Below are positions 38,962 to 44,900 of a DNA stretch of 64,000 bases, one piece after another. Positions within the stretch are counted from its first letter, which is position 1. The number at the start of each line of letters is the position of its first letter. The notes beneath the pieces were generated by a model. The model did not search any database and was not told where the DNA came from. It was given only the letters and a program-made list of their open reading frames with translations. The DNA is from Anthoceros angustus (Eukaryota > Plantae > Anthocerotophyta): NCBI GenBank assembly GCA_010909165.1, contig MU008161.1:1116001-1180000 (forward strand). Direction: 5' to 3'. Position numbers and translations under genes: made by a program.

Positions 38962-41900
38962 ATGGATGGGAGTCTGGTTGCGAGCGTGGGAGCGCAATGC
39001 AGCGGGCCTGGCTTGCTGTCCAGCGGGGTAATAGCCTCAGGCGGTGTGGCTGGTGCCGGGGGTGGTTGGAAGGGGTTGTCACAATGCACGCGAGCTGTGT
39101 TGAGGAGGAGTGATTCTGGCAGCAGTGGTAGGTCCTTATCGCATTCCGCAGCGAGGAGCTTGAACAGCGGGCCGCTGCTAGGATGGTTTCCAGCAACACC
39201 GTCGTGGCGGCGTGGAAAGGGAGGTTTCAAAAAGAACCGGAGCACGTTGTGTGTGGTTCACAGTACCTTGGCTACGGAATCCCTGCCTACGTTCCCCATG
39301 GAGCCCGCAGAGCCCGTGGAGAAGACGCTTGCACTTCCCATCGACTTGTATCAGGTGTGTCCTCGTGTCTCTTGGAGGGAAAGGTTGTGGTTTTGATTCT
39401 GCGATGCCGGCAAATTGTACTCATAGCGAGCGGGCGTAGGGGGTGTAAGTCTGTGTACCCTTGTCAGTTGTCCCTTGCGTATGCAGCAGGGAAGATGTAA
39501 GCCGTGAGGTTAGTAGTAGGTGAAACAACGTGCCAGGATCACATGCTTGGCTTGCAGGTGAATCTGTGGGCCGAAGACTAAGCTTGTTCATCCTGTGTAA
39601 TAGGGTCTATAGAAGACTAGGGCAGGCAGGGGAAAGTCACAAAGAGACGCATGTCAGTATCTGCTCTCGCCTGGACAAATTCTCAGCAGTTTGTCGTGAC
39701 TTGACCACATGTTCAAGGTCCTTCTGTTGTTTGCTTTCTGACCAGTAGGATGGTATTCCAGGTTCTTGGGGCGGAGACACATTTCCTGGCGGATGGGATA
39801 GCCAGGTGCTTTGAGTCTCGAGTTGCAAATGCCCCAACTGAGAAGTTCTCAGAGGAGACTCTTCTCGTGCGTGAGGAGATTCTCAGAGCTGCAAGAGATA
39901 CCCTATGCGACCCTGAGATGCGCGGTCAATACAACCAGGGGCTCGTAGAAGATGAGTCCGGCACTATCGTTGTTGATATACCTTGGAGCAAGGTATAGTC
40001 ATCCCGGTAGCATATGGCAAATGAAATTTGTGTATTTTAATGGCAAGACAGAGATCCACTGGCTGCTTGTTCTCTAAGTCGTTGCTTGATGCAGGTGTCT
40101 GGGGCGTTGTGCATCCTTCTCGAGATCGGAGAGACGGAGATCGTATTACAGGCTGGCCAAGGTCTACTTGACGATGAATCCAGCAGCAGTTTCCGTCGTG
40201 ATGTTTTGCTAGCCATGGCTTTGGCTCACGTTGACCTGTCTCGAGAGGCATTGGCCCAAACTCCACGGGCTATTGTCAGTGCTTGTGACCATCTTGAGAA
40301 AGCGTTGAACCTCCTGCAGGTCTGTTTCTTTTCTTTGAGTTACAAGGGTCTAACCACGTCGGCTTCTCCTTGATCCTGACTTGGCTGCTATGTTTGTGCC
40401 AAGTACTTTAATCTGAGTTCTTTGCTTGTACATCAGGAGGAGAATGGGGTCGGCTTTGCTCCGGAACTGCAAAGTCAGATCTCGCGTACACTGAGCGAAA
40501 TCAGACCGCAATTTGCGCTAGAGCTTCTGTCCTTGTCTCTAGACAAGGAGAATGCTTCAATGCGTGCGGATGGTATTAGTTGCCTTCGATCTTTTTATCC
40601 GCCAACGACGGCACATATTCCACCGAGGGTTTCAACCCCTAGTTCGCCAACACAAAGATCCTCGCTCCCCTTTAAATAATAAGTTCATATGCTCCTTGAT
40701 ATATAAGGCTTAACATCTTGAGGATAGAGGAGCCCTAGCCAAGATCATTGCCCTCGATGACATAGCATAGAAGCTTTGTGATGGATATATATATTTGAAT
40801 ATAGTGGAGCTCACATACATCAAGATTGAATATATAGATACGCTGCGAAGAGAGCACCGCCTCAAAGAAACCACTCCCAAGATAGGTACTACACAGTGAA
40901 GGAACACAACTCCGCTGTGAAGGAGCACCACTCATGTGAAGGAACACCACCACTCTCCAGAAGGAACACCACCACTCTCCATGTGGAAGGAACATCTATT
41001 CCACAGGAAGGAACATCTATCTCCACAGGAAGGAGCACCACCACTCTCCACGGAAGGAAGGAGCACCACCACTCTGCTGTGAAGGAACACCACCACTCTC
41101 CGCGAAGGAACACTACCACTCTCCACGGAAGGAACACTACCACTCTCCACATCTAATATCTAATTAGTAGTCCACCTATATAGACTTCTTCTTCTTCTTT
41201 TATCTTAAAAGTTTATTTATTATCTTTATAGATTATATTATAAAAATATTATTTATAAAATTAAATTATTATTCACTTATAATATTCTTCTTGTAGAAAC
41301 CTACTTACATCTCCCCATGACACTATGAGTACTAGGATGTGAGGCAATGACACCGGAAAACCATGGGTTATTATGTCATGGTATTTGGACTTCATGGTGT
41401 AGTTGGTTTATTACCCTTAGGGACTTGAATACAATTGTTATTGTTGTTGTTGTTCATCTAATTGGTTCTCACGTCCATTTGACAATGAGAGTCTCGGTTT
41501 GAGTAAAGTGAAGTCATGTTGGAAAGAACAGTCCGATTGGTCTAAATTGGAGTGTTATATATACCTTATTAAATTTAAGGTGTATATTAGTTTTAAATAT
41601 TTAACGATATCCAACCCTCTTGGATTTATTACATTTCATCTTTGGACACATTCCCAAGCTAGAGGCTATTTAACCTTACAAACTTAATTTGGAAGCCCCA
41701 CCATGCAAAGGAGGCCCACATTTGTCCAAGACAATCGCCTTCTTTGTCCATATGGGTCAACAGTTTCCACGCCATAGCTTCTTCTTAACGTCCATCGTCT
41801 GCGATCCTCTCATGCCCGGCCGCCTTACGCGCCATGCCCAATTCCCTATGCCCCATACCCATATGTCTAAGTCGCCTTACAGCACCTAAGTGGCTCCCAA

Positions 41901-44900
41901 GGCTGAAGGTTAAAACCTTATGCATGTCATAAGTTTCGATTATGATCTTTAGCCTAAGCTCGTTGTTGATGAACAACGTGTGCCTTACTCAGAATGATGA
42001 AACGTGTGAGCAATTCTTTTTATTTCTTGTGTCTTTGCAATTAAGGCGTTGTATGTGTATGCCACTAATGTATTTTTCTTGTCCCATGGTGGTCCTTCTC
42101 CCCTTAGTGGACATGAATATCATTGTTGTTGTTGAGCAATCTTATCACATCTCACGCGCCGAGTTGGATCTCGACAGCGCATATCTCAAAAGGCTACTCA
42201 TATTTATTTTGTATCCTCCAATCATGTATGTTTTCTATCTCCGCCTAACCCTACATCCATAAAGTACCTTGGCATCCATGCTATTTAAGCATGATAGTTT
42301 AAGCCTCCACAGCCATGATGAGGCATGGGACCAAAATGGACATGGAGCTATGTCATGGACTTGTTGATTGTGAGCATGGATAATGGAGCTGGAAGACACC
42401 CAAGTTGTGCTAGTGCCCAAATAGTGGGCTCCATTGCTAAATGTAGGGGTGCTTAATTCATTAGGTCTTTTTAGAGATCCAATGACACAATGAAAATATC
42501 CATCACCTCTATTTCTGAAATCTATTACAAGAGGCCATTCAAGAAATTAAAATTACAACCCGATGTTAGAAATTTAATATATATTACTATATATCAGAAA
42601 AATAATTTCAAATAATACTAATATAATATACACCTTGCATAAACTGTCACCCTTGTATGGAAAGAAGAAAGTTCTGGACAACAATAATGACAACAGAATC
42701 AAGTGGAGAAAACAATGTGCGGTCATCAGGGCCTAGCTCTTGAAGTGTGTCACCGATGGATAATTCATAAGCTGTTCCAAATAAGACAAAAATTATTAGT
42801 TTCAAAACAAAGTATGTCAAAAGAGGCCAAATATATATACTGGTCCATAATTAATCAACGATTCCTGCTGCTTGACCACCTAAAGCTCCTGCTACGACAG
42901 CTCCCGGACCGAACTTTTGACCACATTAGCATGATTGTGAGAGGGCAATTGAGGAACAGACGAGGATACCAACCACGAGAAGTAGCCTATGTAAAAAGAT
43001 CAAAATAGAATAGACTTGCTGCCTCTGGCTCTCCTGTTGGACAGCATGACTTAAATAAAATTTTCTTCTCCTTCTGCATGAAATGATGGAGAAAGGTCGA
43101 AGAGAAACGCAACAACATCCCTAACGAAGACCACCGCTAAGTTGAGGAGAGAGGGAAACGAAGCGAAGAATAGAAAGCTTAAGTGCTTGACGAAGCTGAA
43201 ACGTATGTCTTTGAAGTAACATCTATCCTTGTCAGTTGTCCCTTGCGTATGCAGCAGGGAAGATGTAAAGCCGTGAGGTTAGTAGTAGGTGAAACAACGT
43301 GCCAGGATCACATGCTTGGCTTGCAGGTGAATCTGTGGGCCGAAGACTAAGCTTGTTCATCCTGTGTAATAGGGTCTATAGAAGACTAGGGCAGGCAGGG
43401 AAAGTCACAAAGAGACGCATGTCAGTATCTGCTCTCGCCTGGACAAATTCTCAGCAGTTTGTCGTGACTTGACCACATGTTCAAGGTCCTTCTGTTGTTT
43501 GCTTTCTGACCAGTAGGATGGTATTCCAGGTTCTTGGGGCGGAGACACATTTCCTGGCGGATGGGATAGCCAGGTGCTTTGAGTCTCGAGTTGCAAATGC
43601 CCCAACTGAGAAGTTCTCAGAGGAGACTCTTCTCGTGCGTGAGGAGATTCTCAGAGCTGCAAGAGATACCCTATGCGACCCTGAGATGCGCGGTCAATAC
43701 AACCAGGGGCTCGTAGAAGATGAGTCCGGCACTATCGTTGTTGATATACCTTGGAGCAAGGTATAGTCATCCCGGTAGCATATGGCAAATGAAATTTGTG
43801 TATTTTAATGGCAAGACAGAGATCCACTGGCTGCTTGTTCTCTAAGTCGTTGCTTGATGCAGGTGTCTGGGGCGTTGTGCATCCTTCTCGAGATCGGAGA
43901 GACGGAGATCGTATTACAGGCTGGCCAAGGTCTACTTGACGATGAATCCAGCAGCAGTTTCCGTCGTGATGTTTTGCTAGCCATGGCTTTGGCTCACGTT
44001 GACCTGTCTCGAGAGGCATTGGCCCAAACTCCACGGGCTATTGTCAGTGCTTGTGACCATCTTGAGAAAGCGTTGAACCTCCTGCAGGTCTGTTTCTTTT
44101 CTTTGAGTTACAAGGGTCTAACCACGTCGGCTTCTCCTTGATCCTGACTTGGCTGCTATGTTTGTGCCAAGTACTTTAATCTGAGTTCTTTGCTTGTACA
44201 TGAACAGGAGGAGAATGGGGTCGGCTTTGCTCCGGAACTGCAAAGTCAGATCTCGCGTACACTGAGCGAAATCAGACCGCAATTTGCGCTAGAGCTTCTG
44301 TCCTTGTCTCTAGACAAGGAGAATGCTTCAATGCGTGCGGATGGTATTAGTTGCCTTCGAAACATTCTCTGGGCCAACGGAGCTTCCTACGGGCCCTTTG
44401 GAGCGGGACTCACGCGTACTCGTGATGAGTTTATGAAAGAAGCCTTTGTGCACATGACAGCTCTGGAACAGGTTCCTGTTCACAGAACTCGGCTCTATCG
44501 ACTCCTTTGTTTGTCAGCTATAAGGTGGTGTAAGTTCCGGTACAGTGCGCATGGTTGCTAATGTGTGTCTGACTTTGTAGGTGGAGCTGTATACTGAAAC
44601 GCCGGTGAACATACCAGCGGAGCCCTCGGAAGTATATGCCGCAGCTCTTGCCCACGTTGCAGAGGGATTTGTGGGCAAAAAACCACGTTTGATAAAGGAG
44701 GCGGACAGCTTATTTTTGCAGTTGCAGCAAACCAATGGGGATATTGGTGATTTTAGAACTACTGATCATCCACTGGAGTACTCTGTGGAGAGGGCCATGT
44801 GTGCTTTGCTGCTCGGTGAAGTGGGCGACTGCAGGGCGTGGTTAGATATAGAGGGCAAAAATCCTAATCTGCGGGACCCAGCTATCATAGACTTTGTATA

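Follow-up and report, generated by a model that had tools for sequence, protein, structure and literature searches.

A 1.13-kb direct repeat around a 2.6-kb insert in the ARC6 gene of the hornwort Anthoceros angustus

A Direct Repeat Flanks a Non-coding Insert within ARC6

In silico analysis of a 64,000-nt stretch of Anthoceros angustus DNA (GenBank assembly GCA_010909165.1, contig MU008161.1, positions 1,116,001 to 1,180,000 of the forward strand; hereafter the window, to which all coordinates refer) revealed that part of the gene for the plastid-division protein ARC6 is present twice, in direct head-to-tail orientation, on the two sides of a non-coding insert. With moderate confidence, we read this structure as a real, single and very recent duplication-insertion that arose in one step, in which break or replication repair would have been accompanied by filler capture or template switching. 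The repeat copies are designated A and A', and the insert X. The affected region is composed as follows:

39355-39458 (+), first 104 nt of intron 1, single copy, lying 5' of the left breakpoint and showing no similarity to the end of X in the alignment
39459-40589 (+), repeat copy A (1131 bp), containing the last 303 nt of intron 1, exon 2, intron 2, exon 3, intron 3 and, at 40437-40589, the initial 51 codons (153 nt) of exon 4
40590-43226 (no strand assigned), insert X between A and A', 2637 bp, 40% G+C, non-coding
43227-44360 (+), repeat copy A' (1134 bp), containing the last part of intron 1, exon 2', exon 3', intron 3' (with an extra GAA) and the first 153 nt of exon 4'

The boundaries were obtained in agreement by a repeat search, a global alignment and a self-BLAST of the window, and the repeat-insert-repeat arrangement proposed in the original prediction was confirmed to the base. 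In the self-BLAST, positions 39456-40589 matched 43224-44360 with 99.5% identity over 1138 columns; this is the sole long near-identical repeat pair in the 64-kb window, and it is far beyond chance. The global alignment showed no substitutions between A and A', introns included, and only three indels, the same three (+A, -G and +GAA, all intronic) that had been listed before: (i) AA in A (39499) vs. AAA in A' (additional A at 43267), within intron 1; (ii) GGGG in A (39629) vs. GGG in A', also within intron 1; and (iii) an extra GAA in A' at 44202-44204, placed 4-6 nt 5' of the intron-3 acceptor. Two of the three fall in homopolymers, and the GAA does not.

The similarity between the copies ends abruptly on either side. 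At the left edge the match extends by another two bases (TA) up to a C/T mismatch, and the microhomology at the X/A' junction amounts to 0-2 bp. The 64-kb window contains no runs of N, and so none at either junction. The region thus holds a unique segment duplicated directly, with non-local DNA precisely at the junction, as is characteristic of a duplication-insertion generated by repair.

Structure of the ARC6 Gene

The exons of ARC6 were read one by one from the sequence, with GT-AG introns. The following elements were distinguished:

38962-39354 (+), exon 1, 131 codons, start codon ATG at 38962, donor GT at 39355, single copy
39355-39761 (+), intron 1 as read through copy A, 407 nt
39762-39992 (+), exon 2, 231 nt
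40095-40319 (+), exon 3, 225 nt
from 40437 (+), start of exon 4 in copy A, broken after 153 nt
43530-43760 (+), exon 2', 231 nt
43863-44087 (+), exon 3', 225 nt
44208-44471 (+), exon 4', complete, 88 codons, continuing unbroken through the right repeat edge (44360/44361), with a Pfam Arm_PDR match that spans this edge
44581-45771 (+), exon 5, 397 codons, intact
45864-46154 (+), exon 6, preceded by intron 5, 96 codons and the stop codon TAG, intact

Exon 1, the exons of copy A' and exons 5 and 6 give an open ARC6 model of 864 codons with GT-AG introns, whose frame is intact exon by exon. The other introns of the gene are approximately 100-400 nt long. Pfam searches identified the Arm_PDR family (PF25515) in the open reading frame (ORF) of exon 3 (2e-21) and in exon 4' (1.5e-10), the ARC6 alpha-solenoid (PF23468) in exon 5 (1.9e-64) and the ARC6-like IMS domain (PF13355) in exon 6 (3.9e-25), i.e., in the order expected of ARC6: Arm repeat, alpha-solenoid and C-terminal IMS domain.

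A full-length, transcript-derived ARC6 of 851 residues (P0249), from the nearest relative in the protein collection, was compared with the window by tblastn. Its residues 96-148 align with exon 1, residues 145-354 with copy A, residues 145-391 with copy A', residues 388-756 with exon 5 and residues 746-851 with exon 6. The alignment with copy A ends exactly at the break. The alignment is colinear throughout, and the duplicated part (residues 145-354) is passed once in the relative and twice in the window. Together with the Pfam matches, this colinearity bears out the assignment of the gene to ARC6 made in the original prediction. The relative is distant (50-70% identity), and the best match of exon 5 in the protein collection is 59%.

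Plant ARC6 homologues of approximately 50% identity were also found on metagenome contigs Ga0307507, Ga0307511, Ga0307515 and Ga0307518 of the Joint Genome Institute (JGI; loci L001-L004). A metagenome scan with exon 5 yielded distant plant loci of this identity and no others. Across the breakpoint, exon 4 is represented by a single, unbroken 89-residue match in each of four distant metagenomic ARC6 loci of plants. The peptides of exons 2 and 3 gave no match on the JGI contigs at E <= 1e-3, where exon 4 was matched.

Breakpoints and Predicted Transcripts

The left breakpoint is found 104 nt after the start of intron 1, and the right one coincides with a codon boundary, after codon 51 of exon 4 (...ISCLR/NILW...). 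Copy A therefore holds the exon-2 acceptor, exons 2 and 3 in full and a truncated exon 4, whose frame continues for 29 codons into X and ends at a TAA stop codon (40677-40679). The ORF that spans this junction (40422-40676) gave no match by word search in the protein collection, a negative of little weight because the collection holds no protein of this species. Copy A' has 303 nt of intron 1 before exon 2' and leads into an intact gene.

From this arrangement, splicing to the nearest acceptor would be expected to produce an mRNA that runs through exons 1, 2, 3 and the truncated exon 4 into X, and encodes a predicted truncated protein of 363 residues without the alpha-solenoid, the membrane span and the IMS domain. 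Three other splices (exon 1 to exon 2', exon 2 to exon 3', or exon 3 to exon 4') would each yield a normal mRNA. Splicing of exon 3 to exon 2' would introduce a repeat of 152 residues, in frame because exons 2 and 3 together comprise 456 nt. In addition, an exchange between A and A' by recombination would bring back the exact wild-type gene. The allele, if real, is probably leaky or revertible, and not a clean knockout. The original prediction described ARC6 as interrupted, which holds for the truncated upstream copy but not for the downstream copy, which forms an intact gene body with exons 5 and 6 and could be reached by any of the three long-range splices to a normal mRNA. Since the downstream copy is fully intact, the structure is not an old gene loss.

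Nature of the Insert

Insert X has none of the termini that define a mobile element. No terminal inverted repeats (TIRs), long terminal repeat (LTR) or poly(A) tail were found in it, the only internal inverted matches being AT-rich and 17-21 nt long; Helitron ends are likewise absent. A short target-site duplication of fixed length (2-20 bp) is also lacking, the flanking repeat being 1131 bp. There was no Pfam family worth noting in X at E <= 1, and no reverse transcriptase, transposase or integrase. No second copy of X was found by self-BLAST within the 64-kb window. An organellar or RNA-gene origin was rejected, as neither a tRNA nor any Rfam family was detected in X, and so was an origin from a vector or transfer DNA (T-DNA), since blastn yielded no match among 72,556 plasmid records.

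The following elements were recognized within X:

40896-41151 (no strand assigned), imperfect tandem array with units of approximately 22-24 bp, found by Tandem Repeats Finder (pattern search: 6 matches vs. 0 expected)
41933-42259 (+), ORF outside the array
42238-42546 (-), ORF outside the array
42691-43005 (+), ORF outside the array

A 21-mer taken from the array had no match in a metagenome scan. The ORFs, of 103-109 residues, exceed in number what a first-order Markov model predicts for ORFs of at least 100 residues (P about 0.004). None of them has a Pfam match, and the two that were tested in a language-model protein atlas showed low recognition and were not seen as proteins; they may be the antisense shadow left by a small gene that has decayed. 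On the minus strand of X, at approximately 42850-43120, lies a glycine-zipper-like reading that is broken by one stop codon, and a short A-rich run, ATAAAAAGA (minus strand), is located at the left end of X.

The tetranucleotide composition of X correlates with that of the AT-rich intergenic blocks of the window (r = 0.55-0.70), and the correlation with genic blocks is about zero or below. We regard X as probably native, non-coding DNA that derives from another part of this genome.

Proposed Origin of the Duplication-Insertion

A one-step repair event could have proceeded as follows. A DNA end, or the nascent strand at a broken replication fork, would have halted after codon 51 of exon 4. A 2.6-kb non-coding piece from another place in the genome would then have been attached to the halted end, as captured filler or as a copy made by template switching, before synthesis or joining re-entered ARC6 1131 bp upstream, in intron 1; as a consequence of this re-entry, the 1131-bp stretch would flank the filler on both sides. 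Support for such an origin is provided by the sharp edges of the repeat and the lack of substitutions between its copies, by the uniqueness of X in the window and its lack of transposon, RNA-gene or vector features, by its intergenic-like tetranucleotide composition, by the single pass through the segment in the nearest relative, by the lack of N runs, and by the position of the break within an exon that is unbroken in four other plant loci. Of the mechanisms listed in the original prediction, the best fit is break repair accompanied by template switching or filler capture; a circular intermediate would need an extra step to reintegrate, and its vector-borne form is excluded by the lack of a plasmid match.

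The three indels may have been left by error-prone repair synthesis, have arisen by later mutation or reflect errors in the consensus. As the GAA does not lie in a homopolymer, it is more easily explained as a genuine difference between the copies or a repair scar than as a consensus error. The dominant stage of hornworts, which is normally the one sequenced, is the haploid gametophyte, and a retained haplotype is for this reason an unlikely source of the second copy.

Several observations weigh against a real repair event: (i) no template for X was found, the sequence being unique in the 64-kb window; (ii) the microhomology at the X/A' junction is just 0-2 bp; (iii) a mutation disabling a core plastid-division gene in a haploid plant should be selected against; and (iv) indels in homopolymers, such as unpolished repeats would show, make up two of the three differences and therefore do not prove the copies distinct.

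Comparable structures are known from other systems. Duplications formed at paired nicks span tens of bp and carry short insertions, and fork stalling and template switching (FoSTeS) and microhomology-mediated break-induced replication (MMBIR) are replication-based forms of template switching. In plants, the repair of paired nicks or double-strand breaks reportedly gives tandem duplications with filler at the junction, as described by Schiml, Fauser and Puchta in 2016 (cited in PMC8153287). The ARC6 structure resembles the products of all these processes in the head-to-tail arrangement of a unique segment, the foreign sequence at the junction, the scarcity or lack of microhomology and the absence of transposon features. 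It differs from paired-nick duplications in scale, with a duplication of 1131 bp and a filler of 2637 bp. Tandem duplications dependent on polymerase theta have been described in Arabidopsis tsk mutants (PMC13031928) and in C. elegans tnsl-1 (PMC13031629). In the tsk mutants, the duplication junctions show microhomology or carry short insertions copied from a template, which in many cases match sequence adjacent to the break (PMC13031928). That system would share with ARC6 the de novo origin of a tandem duplication in a plant genome, and is characterized by replication-associated breaks and joins made by end joining; however, an unrelated insert of 2.6 kb, as found here, is not its signature.

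Alternative Explanations

A less likely but still plausible alternative is an error of assembly, and the earlier view that the structure is either very recent or an assembly artefact is supported by our analysis. There would then be one true copy of the 1.13-kb segment; contig or read ends overlapping by 1131 bp would have been left unmerged, with X placed between them as a chimeric piece of another locus. The differences between A and A', which are limited to indels (two of them homopolymeric) at approximately 1.3 per kb, are of the pattern seen in a low-coverage or unpolished long-read consensus. Neither junction shows clear microhomology, as in blunt artificial joins, and a real structure would mean the disruption of a core gene in a plant that is haploid. 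When long-read assemblies contain false duplications, these usually lie directly adjacent to each other or are separated by an N gap. The ARC6 repeat is like them in its adjacent, near-identical copies differing by indels only, but unlike them in the 2.6 kb of unique sequence between A and A'. Moreover, neither junction has an N gap, X is joined to ARC6 at both ends, which requires two coincident errors, the GAA difference is atypical of consensus error, and retained haplotigs are unlikely in a haploid source.

An insertion of a mobile element or of a retroposed transcript between nicks staggered by 1131 bp, which would make X the inserted piece and A and A' a giant target-site duplication, is unlikely. 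The A-X-A' shape fits such an event, X has the short A-rich run at its left end, and its three ORFs of at least 100 residues outside the array are more than the Markov model predicts. However, X has no TIR, LTR or real poly(A) tail and shows no recognizable transposase, integrase or reverse transcriptase, its ORFs are not recognized as proteins, and it has no other copy in the 64 kb, although the window holds a Copia element. A giant target-site duplication by a transposon or by retroposition, as suggested by the wording of the original prediction, is thus unsupported. Reversed-ends transposition of hAT elements also produces kb-scale direct duplications around an inserted element, and in a maize example the repeats are 1262 and 1257 bp long (PMC3744419). 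The ARC6 structure is similar in that kb-scale direct duplications are parted by an insert. In the reversed-ends model, a separate element copy stands before every duplicated segment, and a target-site duplication of 8 bp is formed (PMC3744419), whereas X is single, is not duplicated in a transposon-element-duplicate pattern and lacks both TIRs and a short target-site duplication; this mechanism was rejected on account of the single X.

Quite unlikely, too, is an older duplication-insertion whose copies were homogenized by gene conversion, with A and X tolerated in a first intron of 4.2 kb or serving alternative transcripts. This history would be in keeping with the full integrity of the downstream gene, with the presence of the exon-1 donor and of a complete exon-2' acceptor preceded by 303 nt of intron, and with exons 2 and 3 being in frame (456 nt). 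It is opposed by the lack of any substitution in 1131 bp that include introns, by the single pass through the segment in the mRNA of the nearest relative, though this is distant (50-70% identity), and by the length of the other ARC6 introns, just approximately 100-400 nt. A Campbell-type homologous integration of a circular DNA carrying A and X, whether natural or a transformation construct, is highly improbable: a single crossover of an A-bearing circle yields exactly A-X-A', but X has no similarity to any of the 72,556 plasmid records, and a natural circle needs A and X to have been joined beforehand at both ends, an extra and unexplained event.

Other Features of the Window

ARC6 is placed head to head with a two-exon gene encoding VPS28, a component of the endosomal sorting complex required for transport I (ESCRT-I), which was identified by Pfam at 37619-38408 (-). 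The start codons of the two genes are approximately 550 bp apart (38409-38961), and the promoter region is probably shared. The best protein matches of VPS28 are 88-90% identical, with 88% for the hornwort Nothoceros aenigmaticus. An AT-rich spacer downstream of VPS28 contains an exact-register tandem duplication of 45 bp (37102-37191; 96% identity). On the other side of ARC6, approximately 300 bp 3' of its stop codon, ARAGORN predicted a tRNA-Asp(GTC) at 46459-46532 (+), for which the Rfam match is partial, at the edge of the range.

Further from ARC6, the window carries (i) remnants of a Copia-type retrotransposon at 8622-10747 (-), with RVT_2 (3.7e-39), integrase core and GAG-pre-integrase domains, unrelated to X by BLAST; (ii) an exon of a gene for the complex I 75-kDa subunit (NDUFS1-like) at 14305-15255 (-), with Molybdopterin oxidoreductase and NADH_dhqG_C domains; (iii) an inverted pair, 19008-20522 and 34296-35706, detected by self-BLAST (1.5 kb, 70% identity, approximately 14 kb apart), which probably represents two old copies of one repeat family; and (iv) blocks of 63-65% G+C at 3813-6143, 29381-32392 and 49144-51210, in which both strands carry long ORFs that overlap and no Pfam family is matched; these blocks represent either a compositional effect or GC-rich genes that lack known domains.

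Significance

Both duplication-insertion variants and false duplications are familiar, and the event is notable only for its location in ARC6. For hornworts, the loss of ARC3 and FtsZ2 has been reported and tied to the possession of approximately one chloroplast in each cell (PMC8964177). A real structure would be a newly arisen structural mutation in a core gene of chloroplast division, in a lineage with other losses of division genes, and a case in which a single repair event both breaks a gene and duplicates an in-frame block of exons. A further reading, which we regard as doubtful, is that a process active in the hornwort lineage makes kb-scale tandem duplications with long filler, and that it has here produced a leaky, self-revertible allele of the single ARC6 in a plant with approximately one chloroplast per cell. 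Were this so, the allele would offer a natural handle on the relation of ARC6 dosage to monoplastidy, as well as a snapshot of exon duplication in progress. If the structure is an artefact, the assembly and the ARC6 gene models that depend on it need correction at this locus. In either case, the finding matters for scoring the presence, absence or integrity of ARC6 in this genome.

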